From positions 124,001 through 188,000 of IMG/VR virus record IMGVR_UViG_3300031344_000002: a stretch of DNA of 64,000 nt. One strand, given 5' to 3'. Shown here one piece after another: positions 2,706 through 31,340 of this stretch (position 1 is the stretch's first letter; each line of letters starts with the position of its first letter). Both the position numbers and the translations under genes were made by a program. The notes below the pieces were generated by a model. The model saw only the letters and a list, made by a program, of their open reading frames with translations, was not told the DNA's origin and searched no databases.

Positions 2706-3797
2706 ATGTTGAAATTAACAACCGAAGATTTTATTAAAAAATCGAGGAATATTCATGGTTATAAATATGATTATTCATTAGTTAATTATATTAATAATCA
2801 TATAAAAGTCAAAATAATTTGCCCAAAACACGGAATTTTTGAACAGACAACATATACACATTATAATGGATGTGGTTGTCCTAAATGTGCTGGTCAATTT
2901 ATGAATACTAAATATTTTATTCAAAAAGCAAAAGAAAAACATAATAATAAATATGATTATTCATTAGTTAATTATATTAATAATTATATAAAAGTCAAAA
3001 TAATTTGCTCAAAACATGGTGAATTTTTACAAAGACCTAATGACCATTTATCTGATAAAGGATGTCCAAAATGTAATGGTGGTGTGAAATTAAATTGTGA
3101 GGAATTTATTGAAAAAGCAAAAATAAAACATAGCGATAAATATGATTATTCATTGGTTGATTATATTAACTCAATAACAAATGTTAAAATAATTTGTTCT
3201 ATTCATGGAATATTCAAACAAAAACCAGCCAATCATTTAAGAGGATGTATTTGTCAAAAATGTGCAGCAATAAAAAAAGCAAATAATCGTAAAAAAAGTT
3301 GTGAAGAATTTATTGAACAATCAAATAGAATTCACAATAATAAATATAATTATTCATTGGTTGAATACAAACATGATAAAATAAAAGTTAATATCATTTG
3401 TTCTAAACACGGTGAATTTTTACAAAAACCTAATCATCATTTAAACGGTAATGGATGTCCCAAATGTAATGATTCTAAAGGTGAAAAAAATATTAAAAAA
3501 TTCTTAATGGAAAAAGATATTAAACATGAATGTCAAAAAACGTTTAATAATTGTATAAATGAAAGAAAATTATTTTTTGATTTTTATTTACCCGAACAAA
3601 ATATATGTATTGAATATGATGGTGAACAACATTTTAAAATTGTTAAATATTTTGGAGGAGAAGTTGGATTTAATATACGACAAAAGAGAGACCAAATAAA
3701 AACTAATTATTGTATAGAAAACAACATAAATCTTATAAGAATAAGATATGATGAAAACATTGAAGATAAATTAACACCAATATTAATAAAAAAATAA
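2706..3797 (+). CDS. putative homing endonuclease: four Zn-ribbon repeats plus C-terminal Vsr/DUF559-like PD-(D/E)xK domain
   Basis: 4x KYDYSLVxY...KVKIICxxHG..F.Q...H..G.GCPKC repeats; FDFYLP..NICIEYDGEQHF nuclease motif. Confidence 0.8.
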   Translation: MLKLTTEDFIKKSRNIHGYKYDYSLVNYINNHIKVKIICPKHGIFEQTTYTHYNGCGCPKCAGQFMNTKYFIQKAKEKHNNKYDYSLVNYINNYIKVKIICSKHGEFLQRPNDHLSDKGCPKCNGGVKLNCEEFIEKAKIKHSDKYDYSLVDYINSITNVKIICSIHGIFKQKPANHLRGCICQKCAAIKKANNRKKSCEEFIEQSNRIHNNKYNYSLVEYKHDKIKVNIICSKHGEFLQKPNHHLNGNGCPKCNDSKGEKNIKKFLMEKDIKHECQKTFNNCINERKLFFDFYLPEQNICIEYDGEQHFKIVKYFGGEVGFNIRQKRDQIKTNYCIENNINLIRIRYDENIEDKLTPILIKK

Positions 3798-3826
3798 ATT
3801 TAAAACAATAAATAATATATAACAAA

Positions 3827-4195
3827 ATGGATATAACTACAATTACAAAAGAACAATTCGATACAGTATATAACAAATATTTACCAAATAAATGGATTAA
3901 ATTTGCCTATAAATATTTTTCAAGTGAAACTGAAAGAAAAAATATTGCATTAAAAAATACAATAATATATGTTTTATCCGGATTATTTGGTATTGGATTT
4001 ATATCGACAATTATTGGTTTATCCAAATCATTAATTATTACAATTACAATGATATATAGTATTTTACTTGCAATACTTGTGCTTTATTTATTTATTGCTG
4101 TTTTTCTTAATAATCTTAGGACAAATAAAATCTGTAAAGAACTTGGTGTAACTAAAGAAGAATATGATGATTTAGTTACAAAATTTTATAGCTAA
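3827..4195 (+). CDS. hypothetical membrane protein (2 TM)
   Basis: two hydrophobic segments; lies just upstream of the lysin. Confidence 0.6.
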   Translation: MDITTITKEQFDTVYNKYLPNKWIKFAYKYFSSETERKNIALKNTIIYVLSGLFGIGFISTIIGLSKSLIITITMIYSILLAILVLYLFIAVFLNNLRTNKICKELGVTKEEYDDLVTKFYS

Positions 4196-4220
4196 TTTAA
4201 ATTTTTTGTATTAAATTTGT

Positions 4221-4249
4221 AAAGGACATTGATATAAGTGTCCTTTTTT
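4221..4249 (+). terminator. intrinsic terminator
   Basis: AAAGGACA-10nt-TGTCCTTT hairpin running into a T-tract. Confidence 0.6.
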
Positions 4250-4280
4250 GTTTAACAGTATTTATGAGAAAATTAAAGTT

Positions 4281-4958
4281 ATGGCAAGTACAATTTCAAA
4301 ACAACGATTAGAAAATTTAAATTGTGTCCTAGGACTCGATTGTTCTAAATATCAAAAAGATATAACTTGGAATAAAGCAAAAGCTGCGGGAATTGATTTT
4401 GCAATTATAAAATCTACGGAAGGTGATTATTACTCAGAAGATAATATTTATAATGTAAAAAACAGGGTTCTTAGTGCACAACAAAATAACATAAAAATTG
4501 GTTATTATCATTTTGCCAGACCTTCGCTTAATATTAATCCTGTAGATAATGCAAACGCTGAAATACAAAATGTATTAAATCATTATAATATATTACCAAA
4601 ACCTAATTTTCCATTAGTTTTGGATATTGAAGCATATGCTAATAATGTGATTTGGAACGATACTGACCATATGAGCAAATATATTACAGCATTTATTAGT
4701 GGATTAAAACAACACGGTATTTCAGTAATTATTTATTCATATAGAAGTTTTATTGATACGAATACCAATCATTTATTTGGGATGCATTCACTATGGCTGG
4801 CATCCTATTTAGATGACCCAGAAAATTATCAACCAGCAATACCACAAGGATGGAATGAATGGAAAATCTGGCAATTTACTGAAAAAGGACAAATTGATGG
4901 TTATGTTGGCGATATTGATTTGGATATAATGAAGAAAGATTATTTTAATAATTTCTAA
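4281..4958 (+). CDS. GH25 muramidase (endolysin)
   Basis: LDCSKYQ, IKSTEG, YYHFA, LDIE, IWQF, DIDLD motifs of GH25; ATG 4281 preferred to TTG 4248. Confidence 0.9.
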   Translation: MASTISKQRLENLNCVLGLDCSKYQKDITWNKAKAAGIDFAIIKSTEGDYYSEDNIYNVKNRVLSAQQNNIKIGYYHFARPSLNINPVDNANAEIQNVLNHYNILPKPNFPLVLDIEAYANNVIWNDTDHMSKYITAFISGLKQHGISVIIYSYRSFIDTNTNHLFGMHSLWLASYLDDPENYQPAIPQGWNEWKIWQFTEKGQIDGYVGDIDLDIMKKDYFNNF

Positions 4959-5386
4959 TGAGTAATAATACTCAAAAACATATTATAGTTAAAGATAGGG
5001 TTGAAATCTATAAAGATTTTGCCATGAATTTATTATATTATATTTTTAATTATTATCTTGATAAAGAAAGTTTAAGTGTTGATGAAGATATTCGTAATCA
5101 CTATTTATGGTGTTTTAATAAAGTTTGTGAAGAATTTAAACAAGAAAATATTGATTTCACCCAAAATAAAGAGTTAAAAGAATATTTTTTTGCATATTAT
5201 TATCACCAATTTTATAAAGTTAACAATAATCAAGATATATCAATAGGATATTATGAAAGATTTTGGAAAAACATATTCGAAATCAATAATCAAAAAAACA
5301 AAAACATAATTAATATTCTAATTGAAATATATAAAATTTATGATACATCAATTTGTCAAGAAAATAATATTTTAGAGATTGTTTAA
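4958..5386 (+). CDS. hypothetical protein
   Basis: ORF overlapping the lysin stop codon. Confidence 0.6.
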   Translation: MSNNTQKHIIVKDRVEIYKDFAMNLLYYIFNYYLDKESLSVDEDIRNHYLWCFNKVCEEFKQENIDFTQNKELKEYFFAYYYHQFYKVNNNQDISIGYYERFWKNIFEINNQKNKNIINILIEIYKIYDTSICQENNILEIV

Positions 5387-5464
5387 AAATCCTTGCATAT
5401 TGTATTTATTGTTATTAAATTTACAAGCATAAAAAATAATTTTATTTTAAAACTATAAAGAATT

Positions 5465-5725
5465 ATGGCAAATTTGAAACTTGATTTATTAAATAAATTA
5501 AACAACGACAAGTATTATGAAGAACTTGAATTAGTACGTCTTGCATCAGACCCTAACACAAATTATAAAGAAAAAATTGATAATATGGCATATAGACTTC
5601 AAAGTATTTCAATTTTGAATGCACAAATTGGTTTGGTTGGACAATATTTTCAAGAACCTGCTCCTGCAGTAAATATTCAGCAACCAGTAGCACAAGTACA
5701 TCAAGGTCAGAGTCATGGTGAATAA
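5465..5725 (+). CDS. hypothetical protein
   Basis: ORF track; coupled to the next gene. Confidence 0.6.
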   Translation: MANLKLDLLNKLNNDKYYEELELVRLASDPNTNYKEKIDNMAYRLQSISILNAQIGLVGQYFQEPAPAVNIQQPVAQVHQGQSHGE

Positions 5726-5923
5726 ATGAACATATTTATTGAAACATATCGATTTTTATTTATATCTTCCATCATTTTTATGATATATATCTTTGGTGAT
5801 TTAATTATAAAAATGATTGGGAGGTTTTATCTAAATAAAGAAACACAATTTGTTTTAACAACACCTGAAAAAATCATATTATGGATTTCTTTGGGAATAT
5901 TTTTTACATATTTAATCAAATGA
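5726..5923 (+). CDS. small membrane protein
   Basis: two hydrophobic segments. Confidence 0.55.
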   Translation: MNIFIETYRFLFISSIIFMIYIFGDLIIKMIGRFYLNKETQFVLTTPEKIILWISLGIFFTYLIK

Positions 5924-6447
5924 AAACAATTAATTTAGCATTACAACCAGTAGAAGGACACTTAATTTCAATGACTCGAAATACTGTTAATGGATGGTAT
6001 GAAATAGAAGTTGGATTACCAAGTAGTTGGGTTTTTGATGAAAACAATGAAATTAAATGTGAAGTTTTGGCTGAAGATAAGACAGGTAAATTAATAAAAT
6101 TATCGCCAAAAAATCAGAATATTATAATTGATGATTTAATTACTTTTGTTGAAATTATTATTAATACCAATAAGAAAATTGCTGAGAAGGAAGAAGAATT
6201 TAAATTGCAAATGGAAGAAATGAAAAAAGGTCTTGAAAAAAAAGCAAGTGCATTCTTTAAAGAATTGGATGAATTGAAAGAAAATTCATTTAAAAAAATT
6301 AATGATAATTTTGTTAAAAACATACATAAATCTGATGAAGATGAAAAGAAAATAAAGAAAAATAAACAACCTAAAATAATATTACCTTCCGGAGAAACAA
6401 GTACAACCAAAACAACAACAGAATTATTAGAAATAGGTGAGGAGTAA
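5920..6447 (+). CDS. hypothetical coiled-coil protein
   Basis: ATGA overlap with the previous gene supports a start at 5920. Confidence 0.6.
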   Translation: MKTINLALQPVEGHLISMTRNTVNGWYEIEVGLPSSWVFDENNEIKCEVLAEDKTGKLIKLSPKNQNIIIDDLITFVEIIINTNKKIAEKEEEFKLQMEEMKKGLEKKASAFFKELDELKENSFKKINDNFVKNIHKSDEDEKKIKKNKQPKIILPSGETSTTKTTTELLEIGEE

Positions 6448-6495
6448 ACCTTTTTTGTTTTAAAATTTTAAATCAATAAATTATGAAAGGCGGAT

Positions 6496-6846
6496 ATGAT
6501 TTTTATGAAATCAAAAGAAGAAATTGAAAATATGAAAACTTTAATGAAAAAATATGTAGATGCTGGTGTTTTTCAAAACAAAATTATTGTATCATCATCA
6601 CCATCAGTTTGTAATTGGTCATTATCAAGGAAATGCTTGGTTGGCGAAAATGGTATTGAACCATTAGAATTATTAGATAATGGTGATGGAAACAAACGAT
6701 TATCATTTGAAAACAATAGAATGGTTTCGATGCAAAATAGAACTGAAATAAATGTTGATGAAATTAATAATTCAAATGGTATAATTATTTCAGATGCAAC
6801 TTATGGAAAACCATATTTTAGATTTGGATTTATACCAACAGAATAA
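6496..6846 (+). CDS. hypothetical protein preceding the first attC-like site
   Basis: ORF track. Confidence 0.55.
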   Translation: MIFMKSKEEIENMKTLMKKYVDAGVFQNKIIVSSSPSVCNWSLSRKCLVGENGIEPLELLDNGDGNKRLSFENNRMVSMQNRTEINVDEINNSNGIIISDATYGKPYFRFGFIPTE

Positions 6847-7026
6847 TGTTAAATCGAAGCACTATGGTAGCATTGTGTATAATGGTTCGCAGCTCATATA
6901 AAGGCAGGGTTTAAAAGGCACTTACCTGTCCAGTTACAAAAATTAACCAAGTGCCTGAAATGTTGGCAAACAACAACACCCCTGCTTTTATATGAGCTGT
7001 TGTTATAGCCAGTTAATTTTAATAAA

Positions 7027-7215
7027 ATGGAAAAACACAACAAAAATGATGAAACACGGCAACTTGGATACTATTGGGTTGAATGGGAAGATAAAGGCAA
7101 TTGGTTAATATTTTGGTTTAATCAAGGATATTGGCAATGTGTTGCAATGGGGGAAATAGAATTGAATGATGACTATATTTTATCAGTTGATGAAACCAAA
7201 TTGATTCACCATTAA
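7027..7215 (+). CDS. cassette-borne Trp-rich hypothetical protein
   Basis: single ORF filling cassette A. Confidence 0.55.
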   Translation: MEKHNKNDETRQLGYYWVEWEDKGNWLIFWFNQGYWQCVAMGEIELNDDYILSVDETKLIHH

Positions 7216-7344
7216 TTGGCTATAATGAAAAGCATATGGTTAGTAAGCCATACGCAAAATTATCAAATTAATATTAACCAACAACATTTATTTGAAAGTA
7301 ATGAAATAATTGCTTATATTTGTTGTTATAAAATCGTAAAAATT

Positions 7345-7530
7345 ATGGAACAGAAAAAGTTAGTAGAACAGTTGATTAAGGCAGCAAATGAAATTTATAA
7401 AAATAGAAAACCAAGTGCTAATTATATTCAACTAAGTGAAGAATTCATATAACAACAGGCAGATGAACGAGAAATTTCATTTGATGACATGGTAGAAATT
7501 ATCAAAAAAGAACTGATGTCTAATGAATAA
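7345..7530 (+). pseudogene. cassette-borne small gene with an internal TAA at 7450-7452
   Basis: MEQKKL...EEFI*QQADERE...MSNE*; the frame continues to the cassette end. Confidence 0.5.
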
Positions 7531-7633
7531 TTTTTATGTTTTATAACGGTGGCAAATATATTGTCGTTTTAATGCAATATATTTGTTGTTATAAGTATGT
7601 ATTATTTTTGTTTTACCTTATAAAAACTAAATT

Positions 7634-7879
7634 ATGAAAAGAACATTTTTAAAAGTTACAAAGAAGAAATTAAAAGAAATGACTTGCACTTTTTATGGTG
7701 CTGGAAAACAACTACAAAATAATGATAAGGTTTGTAGTGGATTTACAATAAACTATGCAAATTTGAATGGAACACCATCATCAGAATATAATCCAAATGA
7801 AATAACCTTATCATTAAAAATGTTCGTTGAAAAAGATGGTGTATTGTATGAATTATATAAAAATTCAAAACAAAAATAA
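7634..7879 (+). CDS. cassette-borne hypothetical protein
   Basis: single ORF filling cassette C. Confidence 0.55.
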   Translation: MKRTFLKVTKKKLKEMTCTFYGAGKQLQNNDKVCSGFTINYANLNGTPSSEYNPNEITLSLKMFVEKDGVLYELYKNSKQK

Positions 7880-7996
7880 TATTACTTATAACTATTATAT
7901 ATAAAGTTATATACTTAACTATTTGATTGTGAACAATAAATATGATAATATTTTAAAGATTTGTTTTAAATGATTAAAAAACATAAAAACTAATAT

Positions 7997-8344
7997 ATGA
8001 ATAAAGATATATTATCGATTGATTATGATGATGATAATAAAGATATTACCGCTTTTAATAAATATCTTGAAACTGACCTAATTCGAAAGAAAAATCAAAC
8101 TGCTTTTGAAATTGAAAAAATGGGTAATCTTTATCTAAAAGAAATTGATAAAAAAAGAAAACAAAAGGAACATAAAAAAACAAAACTAATTCCATATATC
8201 ATAAAACATTCAAAAGGTATGTATGATATAGAGGAATTAAATTCATATAGTTTTGAAGATATTCGAGACATTCATAATAAAATAAAAAAAGAAAGTCTTT
8301 CATCAATTTCAAAATTTTTTCATTTTATTTTTAATGTTAATTAA
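7997..8344 (+). CDS. hypothetical protein
   Basis: ORF track. Confidence 0.55.
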   Translation: MNKDILSIDYDDDNKDITAFNKYLETDLIRKKNQTAFEIEKMGNLYLKEIDKKRKQKEHKKTKLIPYIIKHSKGMYDIEELNSYSFEDIRDIHNKIKKESLSSISKFFHFIFNVN

Positions 8345-8385
8345 ATATTAACCACATTTATATTGTAATAAATAAAAACATTAAT

Positions 8386-9213
8386 ATGAGTCAATTATTT
8401 GATACTGTATTTAATCCAAGTAGCATTTATGAACCAAATATGCGTTTCATTAATGTAAAATCTGTTCTTATTTATCCTACATTGGAAGAACTTAAAAAAA
8501 ATAACAAACCTTTGTTTGATAGTTGGAGTAATTTGTCAAAAACCAAGTATGGCTTTGATATGAATGTTACTCATAGTATTGCTGGAACAATGACAGATGA
8601 AACTCCAATATGTGCACAAAAAATATATGAGGACAATGCACCAAACTATCCTGAATATAGTAGAATTATTGCTATAACATATGCAAAGGTATTTGTAGAA
8701 GATAATAAGCCGAAAAGTAATATAATGAATTTTTTTGGGGAAGAAGAACATCGCATACTTGAACAATTTATGGAAGTGTTATATCAATTATCAAGTGATG
8801 GCGTTCAGTCAACCCCAAAATATTTTCCGATGCTTTGTGGACATAATATTATAAATCATGATATTCCTTTTTTAATTAAAAGATTTATTATTAATAAAAA
8901 TAAATTTGAAATAAAAAAGGGATTGCCATTAATTTTAAAAAAGTGTTTAAGTGCAAAACCTTGGGAATCTGATATTGTTGATACTGTTAATGTTTGGAAA
9001 TTTAATGGTTATGATTATATATCATTAATGCTTATTGCTGATTTTATGGGTCTTAAAAAAACAGTAGATTTATTACCAAATAATGAATTATCGAAATATT
9101 ATTGGAATAATGTCAAAGAAAAACCAGAAGAAACACTTAAATTTATATTATTACAATCAGCAACACAAACAAATCTTGTCATTCACCTCATGAATGAATT
9201 GAGACGATTATAA
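8386..9213 (+). CDS. PolB-related 3'-5' exonuclease-like protein (DnaQ fold, possibly degenerate)
   Basis: ExoII-like LCGHNIINHDIPFLIKR and VDTVNVWKF; ExoI/ExoIII acidic residues not obvious. Confidence 0.6.
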   Translation: MSQLFDTVFNPSSIYEPNMRFINVKSVLIYPTLEELKKNNKPLFDSWSNLSKTKYGFDMNVTHSIAGTMTDETPICAQKIYEDNAPNYPEYSRIIAITYAKVFVEDNKPKSNIMNFFGEEEHRILEQFMEVLYQLSSDGVQSTPKYFPMLCGHNIINHDIPFLIKRFIINKNKFEIKKGLPLILKKCLSAKPWESDIVDTVNVWKFNGYDYISLMLIADFMGLKKTVDLLPNNELSKYYWNNVKEKPEETLKFILLQSATQTNLVIHLMNELRRL

Positions 9214-17058: not shown

Positions 17059-18537
17059 ATGCAAAAAATGAAAACAAAAAAATTATTGTCAACTATTATG
17101 GGAATTATTATTACATTGATTGTATTAATCACATGTAAAAAAGATGATTTTAAAGAAATTGTTGGTACGTGCCCCCAATCACAAATAGAATTTACTGTTG
17201 CATTATCATCAAAACCTCTTGCTGGCGGAACAACAATTGGTGATGGAACATTTCCTAAAGATTCATCGATAACTGTTGCTGCAACTCCAAATACTGGATA
17301 TGTTTTTACTAATTGGACAAATGAAGCAACAATTGTTTCAACAAGTTCAAGTTATACATTTACTTTAACAAAAAATACAACATTAATTGCCAACTTTACT
17401 CCTGTAATTGCTGGAAATTTTGCTGTTATATTATCATCAAAACCTCTTGCTGGCGGAACAACAAATGGTGGTGGTTCATTTCTTGCTGGTTCTTCAGTAA
17501 CAATTAATGCAATACCAAATATTAATTATAAGTTTATTAATTGGACAAAAGGAACAACTATTGTTTCCGTAACCCCTAGTCATACGTTTATTTTAACAAA
17601 AGATACAACATTAATTGCAAATTTTTTACTTAATGCATATACATTAAATGTTACCGCAGTTAATGGTAGTGTCACAAAAACTCCCAATCAATTTACGTAT
17701 AATAGTGGTACTTCGGTTATCCTTATACCTATTCCTGCTTTAGGATATGTATTTAATTCTTGGAGTGGTGATGCAAGTGGTAATATAAATCCTTTAAATA
17801 TTACTATGAATTCTAATAAGAATATTATAGCTAATTTTACTGCAATTATTATTATTTGCCCTACAATTATTGATTTAGGATTATCAGGTAACTTTGCAAT
17901 ATTTGCAGAATCTGGAATTTCAACCACTGGTGTTACTTTAATTACAGGCGATATTGGAGTAAATCCTGTGACATCTACATCAATAACTGGATTTGGATTA
18001 ATTCTTCCAGCAGGTAGTGCATTTTCAACATCAAGTCTTGTTGCCGGAAAAATTTATGCTCCTGATTATGCTTCACCTTCACCTGCTAACATGGTAACCA
18101 CAAGTGGCAATATGCATACAGCATATACAACTGCAAATGGTTTAGTTGTTCCAGCACCTGTTAATGAATTCATGGCTGGTAATCTTAATGGTCAAACTTT
18201 AACTAAAGGTATTTACAAATGGAGTTCTGGCGTTTCAATAACAAATGGTATTGTATTGGATGGTGGTGGTGATAATTGTGCAACATTCATATTCCAAATA
18301 GCTAAAGACCTTACAGTAGCAAATAGTGCAATTATTACATTACAGAATGGTGCTCAAGCAAAGAATATATTTTGGATAGTTGCTGGTAGTGGTGCAATTT
18401 TAGGAACAAACGTTAATTTTAGTGGAAATATTTTATGTAAGACATTGATTTCAGTGAATACTGGTAGTAAAGTTACTGGTAGATTGCTTGCTCAAACGGC
18501 AGTTACATTAAATGCGGTAACAATAGTTAAACCATAA
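17059..18537 (+). CDS. ice-binding family protein (DUF3494) lipoprotein with Listeria-Bacteroides/InlB-B repeats
   Basis: LITC lipobox; three A.P..GY.F..W repeats; C-terminal FAIFAESGIST..ITGDIG..GIYKW..FIFQI..NIFW..GRLLAQTAVTL. Confidence 0.9.
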   Translation: MQKMKTKKLLSTIMGIIITLIVLITCKKDDFKEIVGTCPQSQIEFTVALSSKPLAGGTTIGDGTFPKDSSITVAATPNTGYVFTNWTNEATIVSTSSSYTFTLTKNTTLIANFTPVIAGNFAVILSSKPLAGGTTNGGGSFLAGSSVTINAIPNINYKFINWTKGTTIVSVTPSHTFILTKDTTLIANFLLNAYTLNVTAVNGSVTKTPNQFTYNSGTSVILIPIPALGYVFNSWSGDASGNINPLNITMNSNKNIIANFTAIIIICPTIIDLGLSGNFAIFAESGISTTGVTLITGDIGVNPVTSTSITGFGLILPAGSAFSTSSLVAGKIYAPDYASPSPANMVTTSGNMHTAYTTANGLVVPAPVNEFMAGNLNGQTLTKGIYKWSSGVSITNGIVLDGGGDNCATFIFQIAKDLTVANSAIITLQNGAQAKNIFWIVAGSGAILGTNVNFSGNILCKTLISVNTGSKVTGRLLAQTAVTLNAVTIVKP

Positions 18538-25675: not shown

Positions 25676-26680
25676 ATGAAAAGTTTTACTGAAATTGGTC
25701 AATATCGACAAGTAGTTAGAGAAGTTAAATCACATCATGATTATACTGGTAAAGATGAAAATGGCGATGCCATATATAGTCATACATCTCCATATCCAGT
25801 ATTAACATTTCGTGGTACAGTTAAATTGCATGGAACTAATAGTTCTATTGTTAAATACATTAATGATGGTCAGATTAAATATGATTTTCAAAGTAGAGAA
25901 AGAATAATAGATTTGACCGGAAAAGATGGGGATAATTGTGGTTTCATGAGAGAATTTCAAAAAAAAGATTATCAAAAACTTTTTGATGATATTGATTGTA
26001 AATCATCAATTGCAATTTTTGGCGAATGGTGTGGAAATGGTATTCAAAAGGGCGTTGCAATTGTAGAATTGCCAAAAATGTTTGTAATATTTGCGGTTAA
26101 AATCGATGATGTATATCAAGATATGAATAGCTTCAAACATTTAAAAAATGAAGAACAAAATATTTACAATATTTTACAATTTCCTACATTTTCAATTGAT
26201 ATTGATTTTAACAATCCTGAATTAATTCAAAATAAATTGGTTGAATTAACCACTAATGTTGAAAAAGAATGCCCTGTTGCTAAACAATTTGGTATTACTG
26301 GTATTGGAGAAGGAATTGTTTGGGAACACATCAATGGCAATGAAAGATATATTTTTAAAGTTAAAGGTGAAAAACATCAAAATAGTAAAGTAAAAACTCT
26401 CACAACAGTTAATGTTGAAGAAATTGAAAACATTAAAACATTTGTTGAATATGCAGTAACTGAAAATAGATTATTGCAAGGAATTGATAAAATGAGAGAA
26501 CTTGGTTTACCTATTGAAAGTAAAACCACTGGTGATTATTTAAGATGGGTTTATAATGATGTTATTAAAGAAGAAAGTGATACTATTGCAGAAAATAATA
26601 TTGATGTAAAGAAAATAGGTTCTGCAATTTCAGCAAAAGCCAGAATGTTTTGGTTAAATTATTTAAACACGCATTTATAA
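25676..26680 (+). CDS. RNA ligase, Rnl2 family
   Basis: VKLHGTN, QSR, FGEWCG, GEGIVW, FKVKGEKH. Confidence 0.88.
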   Translation: MKSFTEIGQYRQVVREVKSHHDYTGKDENGDAIYSHTSPYPVLTFRGTVKLHGTNSSIVKYINDGQIKYDFQSRERIIDLTGKDGDNCGFMREFQKKDYQKLFDDIDCKSSIAIFGEWCGNGIQKGVAIVELPKMFVIFAVKIDDVYQDMNSFKHLKNEEQNIYNILQFPTFSIDIDFNNPELIQNKLVELTTNVEKECPVAKQFGITGIGEGIVWEHINGNERYIFKVKGEKHQNSKVKTLTTVNVEEIENIKTFVEYAVTENRLLQGIDKMRELGLPIESKTTGDYLRWVYNDVIKEESDTIAENNIDVKKIGSAISAKARMFWLNYLNTHL

Positions 26681-28732: not shown

Positions 28733-29299
28733 ATGGAAGAAGAAAAAGTATTGGAATATAGAATGTATTTCTTTGTGCCTTATAATGTTAGCGAGATACA
28801 AAAAAGTTTACAAGCCGGGCATTCGGCATTAGAATATGCTCAAAGATATGGTCAATCAGAAGAATTTAAGAATTTTATGAATGATAAAACTTGGATTATC
28901 TTAAATGGCGGTACAACTAATGATGAAAGGGATTTTAATGAAATTGCATTAGGAACTCTAAATCAAATTGCTGATGGTTTATTGGAGAATGATATACAAT
29001 TCTCATATTTTCGTGAACCAGACCTTAATAATGCACTTACTGCAGTTTGTTTCATTTGTGATGAAAGAGTATTTAACGGAAAAGATTATCCAGATTTTGT
29101 GGATTATATTCTTGATATCAAAATGTATACCAAAACAGAAGCAGCAACACCCGCAGAAAATATGATTATGTTAAAAATAAAAACTAATGAAGAATTAATA
29201 ATAATGTTTCCAGAATATTATAAAGAATGGGTGCGCTTTATTGGTGGAATTAAGAATGTATTTCTACGTGAATTAATTAAAGATAAAAAATTAGCATAA
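28733..29299 (+). CDS. peptidyl-tRNA hydrolase Pth2-like protein
   Basis: QAGHSA..., WIILN, FREPDLNNALTAV motifs. Confidence 0.65.
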   Translation: MEEEKVLEYRMYFFVPYNVSEIQKSLQAGHSALEYAQRYGQSEEFKNFMNDKTWIILNGGTTNDERDFNEIALGTLNQIADGLLENDIQFSYFREPDLNNALTAVCFICDERVFNGKDYPDFVDYILDIKMYTKTEAATPAENMIMLKIKTNEELIIMFPEYYKEWVRFIGGIKNVFLRELIKDKKLA

Positions 29300-29336
29300 A
29301 TAACAAATAAAATTAACTTTTAAATAAATTATTAAT

Positions 29337-29744
29337 ATGGAAAAAGAAATAAAGATTAACGTACCAGATGGTTTTGAAATTGATAAAGATAATTCTACTT
29401 TTGAATTAATTAAATTCAAACCTGTTGTAAATAAGGAAGATAAGAATAAATCTATGTCAGATTTCTTATTTCAGATGTTTAATAATGCTGTATGCAAAAT
29501 TACTGGTGAAAAAGAATTAATATATTATAAATTAGATGGATATAATCCAAATTCTGATAATAATAAGTGGTTATTTCAACAGGATTGGAAAAGTGGTAGA
29601 CTTTGGATAAGATATACTTTAATTTGGCAAATTTTCGAAGAAAGATTTGGTCTTAACTACGAGCAAATCAGAGATTTCATTCAAGATTGGGTGGAAACCA
29701 ACCTAAATTGGAAGGGTTTAACACCCCAACGATTCTTGCCATAG
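29337..29744 (+). CDS. array-associated protein A, whose C-terminus is encoded by repeat 1 and spacer 1 of array 1
   Basis: 135 aa ending ...IQDWVETNLNWKGLTP-QRFLP*; paralog of 30748-31161. Confidence 0.8.
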   Translation: MEKEIKINVPDGFEIDKDNSTFELIKFKPVVNKEDKNKSMSDFLFQMFNNAVCKITGEKELIYYKLDGYNPNSDNNKWLFQQDWKSGRLWIRYTLIWQIFEERFGLNYEQIRDFIQDWVETNLNWKGLTPQRFLP

Positions 29745-30055
29745 ACTATTTTTTTGGTGGAAACCAACCTAAATTGGAAGGGTTTAACACCTGTAATTGG
29801 TGTTGAGATAAGTGCCAAAATGGTGGAAACCAACCTAAATTGGAAGGGTTTAACACCTGTAAATGCAATCTTTCTAAAGGAAGTAAAGGTGGAAACCAAC
29901 CTAAATTGGAAGGGTTTAACACCTAAACATCCTTATAGTCATCTTGTGTTCGGGGTGGAAACCAACCTAAATTGGAAGGGTTTAACACCACATAGACATT
30001 GACATAATCTGCGTTATACGGTGGAAACCAACCTAAATTGGAAGGGTTTAACATA
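29690..30055. CRISPR. CRISPR-like array 1: six 36-nt repeats and five 30-nt spacers; no cas genes
   Basis: GGTGGAAACCAACCTAAATTGGAAGGGTTTAACACC at 29690, 29756, 29822, 29888, 29954, 30020 (last ends TA instead of CC); spacers unique. Confidence 0.9.
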
Positions 30056-30111
30056 TTGATTGTAAAAATAATAACAATAATATCAACAACTGAAACTAAA
30101 TTTGAAGAATA

Positions 30112-30711
30112 ATGAATATACGAAAAATTTTAAATTTACCAAATAAAGCTCAAAGAAGATTTATTGAACTTAGTAATGAAATTGTTTTAAATAATTGTGA
30201 AGTTATTGCTCGTGAAGAAATGGAAGAACAGCAAGATAATAAACTTTTTCATGACAGTCGGTGTCCAATATGTAAAAGTAGAAAAGATATTATAAATAAA
30301 ATTGTTAATATTCAAAGTCTTAATCATATTGAAGGTAATTTCAAATTTGGTTTTGGTAAAATAAAAACTGTTATCACAACTAATACTTATAAAGTAAATC
30401 ATTGTAATTCTTGTGGTAATGAATGGGAAATGTATAAAACCAAACCAATTTCACGAACTAATATATTAAATGTTGCTTTTAAATATTTGAAAGAAATATT
30501 GGAAGACCCAGAAAAAAATAAACAAGATTATAAAATGGAAGCCATACAGGTTTTTGAAAATTCATATGCAGAAACATTGTATGAACTTAATGTATGGGTG
30601 AGAACTGATATTAAATTATCTGTTTTAAGAAAACATTATAAATCAGTATATGACAAATATATATTTCCACAAGTTTCTCAATCATTTGTTGATAAATATA
30701 TTAAAGAATGA
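30112..30711 (+). CDS. Zn-ribbon protein between the two array modules
   Basis: CPIC ... HCNSCGNEW. Confidence 0.6.
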   Translation: MNIRKILNLPNKAQRRFIELSNEIVLNNCEVIAREEMEEQQDNKLFHDSRCPICKSRKDIINKIVNIQSLNHIEGNFKFGFGKIKTVITTNTYKVNHCNSCGNEWEMYKTKPISRTNILNVAFKYLKEILEDPEKNKQDYKMEAIQVFENSYAETLYELNVWVRTDIKLSVLRKHYKSVYDKYIFPQVSQSFVDKYIKE

Positions 30712-30747: not shown

Positions 30748-31161
30748 ATGGAAAATAAAGAAATAAAGATTAACGTACCTGATGGGTTTGAAATTGATAA
30801 AGATAATTCTACTTTTGAATTAATTAAATTCAAACCTGTTGTAAATAAAGAAGATAATAAATCCAAAGAAATGTCGGATTTATTATTCTCAATGTTTAAT
30901 AACACTGTGTGCAAAATTACTGGTGAAAAAGAAATAACTTATTATAAATTAAATGGATATAATCCAAATTCTGATGATAATGAGTGGTTATTTCAACAGG
31001 ATTGGAAAAACGGTAGATTATGGGTAAAATATTCACTTATTTGGAAGGTTTTTGAAGAAAGATTTGGTCTTAACTACGACCAAATCAGAGATTTCATTCA
31101 AGATTGGGTGGAAACCAACCTAAATTGGAAGGGTTTAACACCAATTCAAGGCGGATATTGA
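30748..31161 (+). CDS. array-associated protein B, whose C-terminus is encoded by repeat 1 and spacer 1 of array 2
   Basis: 137 aa ending ...IQDWVETNLNWKGLTP-IQGGY*; paralog of 29337-29744. Confidence 0.8.
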   Translation: MENKEIKINVPDGFEIDKDNSTFELIKFKPVVNKEDNKSKEMSDLLFSMFNNTVCKITGEKEITYYKLNGYNPNSDDNEWLFQQDWKNGRLWVKYSLIWKVFEERFGLNYDQIRDFIQDWVETNLNWKGLTPIQGGY

Positions 31162-31340
31162 CGACAGCAAAAGGTGGAAACCAACCTAAATTGGAAGGGT
31201 TTAACACCGTTGCCAGTAATGCCCTTGCGGAACTATATGGTGGAAACCAACCTAAATTGGAAGGGTTTAACACCAGAAAAGGATAACTGGTTTTCCTATT
31301 GTTTGGTGGAAACCAACCTAAATTGGAAGGGTTTAACACC
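31107..31340. CRISPR. CRISPR-like array 2: four 36-nt repeats and three 30-nt spacers
   Basis: same repeat at 31107, 31173, 31239, 31305; no spacer shared with array 1. Confidence 0.9.

Follow-up and report, generated by a model that had tools for sequence, protein, structure and literature searches.

Here, we describe an unusual genetic module in a 64,000-nt stretch of DNA (hereafter, the window), which comprises bases 124001-188000 of the 218,381-bp IMG/VR virus record IMGVR_UViG_3300031344_000002 (here G000). In this module, the 3′ end of a small conserved phage gene is at the same time the first repeat of an array of the kind known from CRISPR loci. Of all the features of the phage modules, this fusion of gene and repeat is the most unusual; it recurs throughout a large protein family and, as far as could be found, has not been described in the literature. 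The explanation that we tentatively favour is that the modules are mini-arrays without cas genes, which host adaptation enzymes construct and which act on a class 2 effector of the host (most likely Cas13b) either as guides or as decoys.

The 36-nt repeat GGTGGAAACCAACCTAAATTGGAAGGGTTTAACACC occurs six times on the + strand of the window, starting at positions 29690, 29756, 29822, 29888, 29954 and 30020, and its period of exactly 66 nt leaves five unique 30-nt spacers; the number of repeat matches expected by chance, as estimated from shuffles, is 0. This array 1 (29690-30055), which is identical in three other assemblies and whose terminal repeat is degenerate at its 3′ end (finishing ACATA), had been recognized together with its 36+30 geometry in an earlier note based on the letters of the window, and the six evenly spaced repeats bear that geometry out. 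What the earlier note overlooked is that repeat 1 is the end of a gene, and that the same genome carries two further arrays and a decayed copy. The gene, present in the list of open reading frames (ORFs) as ORF1 (29337-29744, + strand), encodes a small conserved phage protein of 135 amino acids; its last 12 conserved codons, (W)VETNLNWKGLTP, constitute repeat 1 (29690-29725, + strand), and its tail and stop codon fall within spacer 1. Array 2 (31107-31340, + strand), with four identical repeats and three 30-nt spacers, begins in the same manner at the end of ORF2 (30748-31161, + strand; 137 amino acids), a paralog of ORF1 with 86% amino acid identity. Array 3 (G000:2902-3269, minus strand), with six repeats and spacers of 30, 30, 31, 31 and 30 nt, starts at the end of a third paralogous ORF (G000:3625-3233, minus strand), and its repeat is a variant in which ACT AAT replaces ACC AAC, both changes being synonymous and G-U compatible.

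Every full array of the three modules sits 3′ of its paralogous small ORF, with the stop codon in spacer 1, and all of them show the near-identical direct repeats (6, 4 and 6 of 36 nt) and unique spacers of similar length by which CRISPR arrays are generically recognized. In Rfam, neither CRISPR-DR nor any other RNA family matched. An identical copy of the third module (G000:C1:2902-3625, minus strand) is found on IMG/VR contig 3300028653_000035. Additionally, a decayed single repeat copy with 6 mismatches (G000:207259-207294) belongs to the remnant of a fourth module (G000:C1:207199-207298), where a short ORF retains the N- and C-terminal ends of the protein.

The three paralogs share 85-86% protein identity, with gene regions ~90% identical at the DNA level, and the ratio of nonsynonymous to synonymous substitution rates among them is 0.20-0.23, which together indicate a real gene whose protein product is under purifying selection. 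ORF1 belongs to no Pfam, PHROG or PADLOC family, its match to Ntox23 being weak and below the cutoff. Its AlphaFold (AF2) model is confident (mean predicted local distance difference test score, pLDDT, of 83), and a fold search with this model returned no match in the PDB and only two unnamed AFDB clusters that resemble it; scores in the ESM Atlas stayed at chance level. Homology of the ORF1 family to BzCas13b was considered and rejected, as none emerged in a profile comparison. Directly upstream lies a region common to the modules (29289-29336, + strand), which may act as promoter or 5′ leader of ORF1 and of which a duplicate precedes the third module. A promoter and terminator scan gave counts equal to chance and no reliable promoter, with Bacteroidota promoters lying outside the coverage of the method.

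The gene-plus-array design extends far beyond G000. A word-based search yielded 46 close homologs of ORF1, all of them unannotated and metagenomic, and the C-terminal motif is the best-conserved part of their alignment. A profile search across 1.84 billion representatives expanded the family to 763 clusters (at 50% identity) with E <= 1e-3, 132 of them with E <= 1e-10, and this protein family is entirely unannotated. Across the family, the last 12 codons of the gene recur 66 nt downstream. Many homologs read into a second copy of the motif exactly 22 codons on, and this second copy co-varies with the first (VEANLGWKSLTP, VEKNTKWSGITP, IETNIGWKGLIP). Very distant members possess different motifs (VEEHLKLEGFTP, LLQDNKMNVLTP, VETTYKMKVGTP, VEHHFKWKEVTP), always separated by a gap of 10 residues, as exemplified by VEEHLKLEGFTP-x10-VEEHLKLEGFTP. 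At the DNA level, ~40 loci drawn from IMG/VR, JGI, ENA, Logan and NCBI show 36-nt repeats, 29-31-nt spacers and 1 to 6 repeats per module, with the gene-embedded repeat standing alone, without any spacer, in about a third of the modules; for finding such loci, a wider protein alignment was too divergent and a narrower one gave a single locus. Among distant members, too, the DNA has repeats of 36 nt, here with spacers of 29-30 nt. The carriers are phages, ranging from contigs of ~13-80 kb that encode RusA, Sak and terminase up to giant phages, including G001, a complete 364,702-bp relative of G000 with terminal repeats. Together, these data demonstrate that the fusion of gene and repeat is conserved throughout the family. 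Two called proteins, P0047 (760 amino acids) and P0062 (588 amino acids), each comprise five consecutive modules read through in one frame, which indicates tandem multiplication.

The repeat is constrained at two levels. Third codon positions are the most variable across 35 repeat variants (0.81 versus 0.44 bits), pointing to selection on the protein. Nevertheless, all 35 variants have ACA as the threonine codon at repeat positions 32-34, whereas the one at positions 8-10 uses all four codons, and the base three positions before the repeat, which ends the codon preceding TGG, is T in 28 of 29 homologs, whichever amino acid is encoded. The invariant ACA and the junction T imply that the junction and the 3′ end of the repeat, ...TTAACACC, are held at the DNA or RNA level as well. 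The hairpin proposed in the earlier note (GGUG/CACC, AAACC/GGUUU and CC/GG, with a 6-nt loop) is indeed the predicted minimum, at -10.9 kcal/mol, but it is neither conserved nor clearly above chance: its z-score against shuffles is -1.69, and 14 of 200 shuffles fold equally well. RNAalifold detected no consensus structure and no covariation across 32 repeat variants from related loci. Three of the eleven hairpin pairs are broken in half or more of the relatives (4-33 is retained in 7, 8-28 in 3 and 14-21 in 16 of the 32 variants), and the pairs that are retained never vary.

Module 1 as a whole behaves as an insertion/deletion unit (29296-30108) that is absent from a population variant, as a contig of run X11, a peat metatranscriptome, joins position 29295 to 30109 and skips 813 bases, i.e. 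all of ORF1 and array 1. RNA coverage in the same run is low and direction-less and speaks neither for nor against processing. In other runs, the repeats are flanked by spacers absent from this contig. The arrays themselves also differ between strains: in a sister strain locus (L079) with a 98% identical ORF, array 2 consists of the distal spacer alone, without the two ORF-proximal spacers. This suggests polarised growth at the gene-proximal end, although a deletion may also explain this one strain comparison. Moreover, distal repeats are often degenerate across loci.

The spacers of G000 are compositionally foreign to this phage. The 13 spacers average 35.5% GC compared to 26.3 +/- 2.6% for random 30-mers of its own genome (P = 2.5e-4). 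In the giant phages, no self-targets exist among the 13 + 2 spacers. In contrast, in four smaller relatives, 5 spacers match DNA of the very phage that carries them, four of them perfectly (30/30) and one over 22/23 nt, while no spacer matches related phages, G001 included. These self-protospacers lie 0.7-5 kb from the array, and all five are in reverse-complement orientation within + strand ORFs, which encode a GIY-YIG homing endonuclease, a DnaD/O-like replication protein, a NinB-like protein and two proteins with no assigned function. In spacer orientation, their 3′ flanks read CTAT, AAAT, CAAT, AAAT and AAAT, with A-T at positions +3 and +4 in all cases.

G000 is a giant phage with a GC content of 26.3% and an estimated completeness of 66% (CheckV). 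A Shine-Dalgarno-like motif precedes just 1-4% of the ORFs of at least 100 amino acids in G000 and G001 (1-7% of ORFs across G000 and six relatives), and in both genomes the sequence 5′ of the start codons is A-rich. By these two features, G000 looks like a Bacteroidota phage, which agrees with the Bacteroidota Cas13b loci to which the earlier note had compared the array.

Judged by its sequence, the repeat is class 2-like. VI-B appears to be the best single guess for its type, with a small type V effector as a less probable alternative. The arrays share with the VI-B arrays of Bergeyella zoohelcum and Flavobacterium columnare the 36-nt repeat, the 30-nt spacers and the absence of a trans-activating CRISPR RNA (tracrRNA), as well as G-N-T-G ... 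C-A-N-C ends, a common 3′ block (GGGTATT-ACA-C like) and identity at 18-20 of 36 positions; moreover, the arrays lack their own cas1-cas2, and the self-matching spacers of the relatives are antisense to ORFs much as VI-B spacers are to mRNAs. The resemblance to Cas13b repeats, which the earlier note had pointed out, holds in register and in CRISPR RNA (crRNA) orientation against five cas13b loci, four of which were found via the gene and not via the repeat, and it exceeds shuffled sequences with P of about 1e-4; genuine VI-B repeats match one another at 16-33 of 36 positions, and real cas13b loci share the 66-nt period. A Cas12f-linked repeat is, however, at least as similar. The ends of the repeat do differ from GTTG...CAAC, yet GGTG...CACC fits the covarying ends (GTTG/CAAC, GCTG/CAGC) of real VI-B repeats. 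The phage modules depart from VI-B arrays in having no cas13b detected nearby or elsewhere in the phage, in their GGTR...CACC ends, in a terminal stem that is broken in most relatives, and in a leader that is a translated gene and has no predicted leader-repeat hairpin.

A type II (Cas9) assignment finds little in the sequence that would fit it, as no tracrRNA anti-repeat is present in G000 or G001: in keeping with what had been noticed before, no reverse-complement match to the repeat longer than 12 nt exists in either genome. Furthermore, the II-C repeats of Flavobacteriales are mostly 46-47 nt long, and the single 36-nt example matches the phage repeat at 15 of 36 positions. No Cas13b model match was obtained in G000, G001 or four other records, other cas families not having been screened genome-wide, whereas the same search detects cas13b in Bergeyella and Capnocytophaga as positive controls. 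Scanning 185,579 species genomes with three copies of a 12-position skeleton of the repeat returned four loci, three of which are arrays with a Bergeyella-type Cas13b repeat that differs from the phage repeat; cas13b adjoins two of these arrays (B. zoohelcum and Capnocytophaga stomatis) and was not detected in C. cynodegmi. A search for host arrays through mis-called array proteins found none. Comparison with bacterial genomes, as had been proposed earlier, uncovered similar repeats of the Cas13b type, but no cas locus with the repeat itself.

Two phage contigs with cas genes surfaced during a 9-mer pattern scan, from which many Thr/Pro-rich coding repeats were discarded. L150 (IMGVR_UViG_3300028886_000064, locus 5076-7082), a 107-kb contig, carries a pair of short 36+30 arrays immediately upstream of a gene for a 503-amino acid Cas12f/V-U4-like protein; outside the searched 9-mer, its repeat is identical to the phage repeat at 16 of 27 positions (P = 2e-4). 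L143 (IMGVR_UViG_3300045988_163575, locus 3382-8809), a 282-kb contig, carries an array of eight repeats that has Cas3 and Cas7 of a type I-F variant on its flanks, shares the 9-mer only and is otherwise unrelated to the G000 modules.

According to the explanation that we favour, host machinery of the Cas1-Cas2 type would take the 3′ end of the gene for a leader-repeat junction, and each acquisition would insert a 30-nt spacer at this junction, copy the repeat and rewrite the short C-terminal tail of the protein. Gene and array would be co-transcribed from the + strand, and the transcript would be cut into spacer-plus-repeat guides by a class 2 effector of the host, for which Cas13b is the likeliest candidate. 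The phage would thereby load the host effector with its own guides, aimed in the case of G000 at non-self, GC-richer targets, and the gene-embedded repeat 1 would also yield a guide-less 'extraneous crRNA', a kind of RNA known to sequester Cas13b. Growth next to the gene, decay at the distal end and a flanking motif on the side away from the leader are mutually consistent with the ORF acting as the leader, with co-transcription on the + strand and with a guide-then-repeat order, as in types VI-B and II-A; Cas13b is favoured on account of the 36-nt repeats, the 30-nt spacers, the guide-then-repeat layout and the lack of a tracrRNA. The natural VI-B spacers of Flavobacterium columnare target mRNA strands only and are gained in trans via the II-C Cas1 (PMC8092290). 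In addition, the leader and first repeat of VI-B arrays can form an extraneous crRNA that sequesters Cas13b, which host leaders suppress by means of a hairpin (PMC13187072); no leader-repeat hairpin of this kind is predicted at the phage module.

Viral mini-arrays and solitary repeat units are already known (Faure 2019; Medvedeva 2019; reviewed in PMC11656645; PMC10651486), and our modules resemble them in being array-only viral loci with few spacers and no adjacent cas genes, for which the use of host Cas proteins is presumed. They differ in that their first repeat is translated, being part of a conserved gene, in that no identical host repeat is known, and in that the spacers of the relatives match the carrier itself and not a competitor. 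Among viral solitary repeats, a class 2, VI-B-like repeat such as that of the phage modules is a type as yet unreported; the survey in question masked ORFs beforehand and found no type VI examples (PMC10651486).

Several observations weigh against host-built mini-arrays serving Cas13b. Neither the 185,579 species genomes nor the called proteins revealed a host or phage cas locus with this repeat, and no prophage copy of the module is present in 401 Flavobacteriales genomes. Cas13b itself is rare, occurring in 7 of the 401 sampled genomes of Flavobacteriales and in 3 of 401 from Bacteroidota, numbers that are small beside the size of the phage family. The phage repeat resembles VI-B repeats modestly, the L150 repeat beside the Cas12f/V-U4-like gene matching it at 24 of 36 positions, and in most relatives an A at position 4 breaks the terminal stem that is typical of Cas13b repeats. 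No targets of the G000 spacers emerged: spacers of arrays 1 and 2 produced only chance-level matches against 50,697 cultured phages, four G000 spacers (three full 30-mers and one 26-nt prefix) had no exact match in IMG/VR, and no G000 spacer matches its own 218 kb or G001. Finally, an active Cas13b loaded with antisense self-guides would be expected to induce dormancy, to the detriment of the phage, but such guides persist in the smaller relatives. Their persistence may reflect an inactive complex, control of the phage's own genes, lysogens that exclude kin phages, or a strand bias of acquisition.

An inactive effector complex on self-guides would favour a second explanation, namely that the module is purely an RNA anti-CRISPR (Racr) decoy, in which a gene-embedded repeat, highly expressed within an mRNA, occupies the host effector with guides of no use, and the spacers are by-products, irrelevant in content, that arise when host adaptation enzymes take the decoy for an array. 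As with Racrs (PMC10651486) and the extraneous crRNA of type VI-B (PMC13187072), a phage repeat mimic could occupy an effector, and the leader plus first repeat has the architecture of an extraneous crRNA, whose overexpression raised plaque counts about 1000-fold (PMC13187072). A decoy would also suit the modules that consist of the gene-embedded repeat and no spacer, the conservation of gene plus repeat 1 as a unit while arrays come and go, the several module copies per genome, the tolerance of self-matching spacers, and the lack of a predicted leader-repeat hairpin such as host VI-B arrays use against extraneous crRNA. The phage mimic, whose inhibitory role is putative, differs from Racrs and extraneous crRNA, however, in lying inside a coding sequence and in growing arrays. 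Known Racrs, like solitary repeat units in general, are intergenic, have their own promoter and are at least 90% identical to a host repeat (PMC10651486), and no such host repeat is known for the module. Moreover, the shared orientation and flanking motif of the five self-protospacers suggest selection or a specific mechanism, and the G000 spacers are non-self in composition, within arrays that are identical in four assemblies. On balance, we regard a pure decoy as rather unlikely.

Two related explanations dispense with the Cas effector altogether or relegate it to a partner, and both seem improbable to us, to much the same degree. In the first, the phage system would be self-contained: the small protein binds the repeat RNA, perhaps in cis on finishing its translation, and the spacers act as antisense guides for transcripts of the phage or its competitors. 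In the second, the modules would represent a previously unrecognized phage-borne RNA-guided system in which the 3′ end of the gene is the guide scaffold and the protein, alone or with a recruited host nuclease, employs the arrayed antisense guides for control of phage or competitor genes, bacterial VI-B-type arrays being relatives and not the source. A self-contained system would account for the inseparability of gene and repeat, which co-diverge over 763 clusters, for the purifying selection on a protein of no known fold or family, and for the way in which modules duplicate, gene and array together, to give as many as five consecutive copies. It would also accommodate self-targets antisense to neighbouring early genes and the fact that no cas gene was recognized beside the modules, and no Cas13b even in the complete 365-kb genome of G001. 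However, the 135-amino acid protein has no recognizable RNA-binding or nuclease motif, the repeat resembles class 2 CRISPR repeats, and the giant phages have no self-targets among their 13 + 2 spacers. The precision of the 36+30 insertions, the flanking motif and the polarised growth are hallmarks of Cas1-Cas2 that nothing in the phage would explain.

Alternatively, the relevant transcript might come from the opposite strand, as a repeat-then-guide RNA antisense to the ORF that directs a small Cas12- or TnpB-like DNA binder, of phage or host origin, to repress transcription of the targeted genes, a type V-like arrangement that we also judge improbable, if anything marginally more so. Read on that strand, the 5′ flanks of the self-protospacers are ATAG, ATTT, ATTG, ATTT and ATTT (an ATTK motif), i.e. 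a T-rich 5′ protospacer-adjacent motif typical of type V, the guides would all pair with the template strand, and non-destructive self-targets suit an effector that only binds. The closest cas-associated repeat adjoins the Cas12f/V-U4-like gene of L150, and both G000 and G001 encode a TnpB-like protein. The modules furthermore recall TnpB/Cas12f-type guide RNAs, in which the scaffold and a protein-coding gene overlap at the 3′ end of the latter and the guide follows immediately downstream, and the T-rich 5′ motif on the opposite strand of the self-targets adds to this likeness; they differ in that the 135-amino acid protein has no similarity to RuvC or TnpB, and in that the scaffold spans just 36 nt and is arrayed.

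The TnpB-like ORF of G000 (G000:C1:214945-216183; 412 amino acids) matches the PADLOC Cas12u4 model (8e-63) and has no array-type repeat nearby, and its counterpart in G001 is located at G001:218239-218844. The same PADLOC model also matches ordinary TnpBs in 9 of 14 control genomes, which detracts from its value as evidence for a type V effector, and the G000 gene lies ~60 kb from arrays 1 and 2 (the array-3 module being at the opposite end of the incomplete contig) and has a guide-RNA-like tail of its own, with no similar repeat in the vicinity. A TnpB-like gene was seen neither in G003, which is 27% complete and the sole self-targeting record searched, nor in the incomplete G005 and G778. 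Growth proximal to the ORF and decay of the repeats distal to it likewise contradict a leader on the far side.

Least probable by far is a device without guides, in which the repeats serve to swap short C-terminal tails at the protein or recombination level, or form an in-frame coding tandem repeat: the 66-nt period does equal 22 codons, the frame is often open through several units and the protein tail alters when the spacers alter, but the tails are unconserved, and an in-frame repeat protein is rejected by the 29- and 31-nt spacers, which break the frame, and by the stop codons in many spacers, and is largely refuted also by spacers that are perfect reverse-complement copies of distant genes.

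Other features of the window lie around or away from the modules. Between modules 1 and 2, a 199-amino acid ORF with two CxxC pairs (30112-30711, + strand) has no PADLOC match and shows weak, below-threshold similarity to Phage_Gp168, a phage sliding-clamp inhibitor, and to zinc ribbons. Approximately 2.7 kb upstream of module 1, a 334-amino acid ORF (25676-26680) contains the RNA_ligase Pfam domain and retains the same position in sister strains. Long tandem repeats with periods of 189 nt and 228 nt, at 2761-3246 and 17191-17625, respectively, are probably repeated protein domains.

Cas-less phage arrays were known before, but a coding sequence that doubles as a leader-repeat junction was not. 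If host adaptation enzymes do extend the 3′ end of a phage gene, arrays can arise from a single repeat-like sequence. The modules would then also be a natural substrate for the in-trans adaptation of VI-B-type arrays, whose spacers are of unsettled origin in most Bacteroidota (PMC8092290), and no type VI-like repeat mimic would have been described in viruses before them. The perfect antisense self-targets suggest that phages regulate themselves by RNA guides or, alternatively, that the effector is bound without being activated, and either would be new biology; should one of the two hold true, this family of phage modules may be a source of compact RNA-binding or anti-Cas13 tools.

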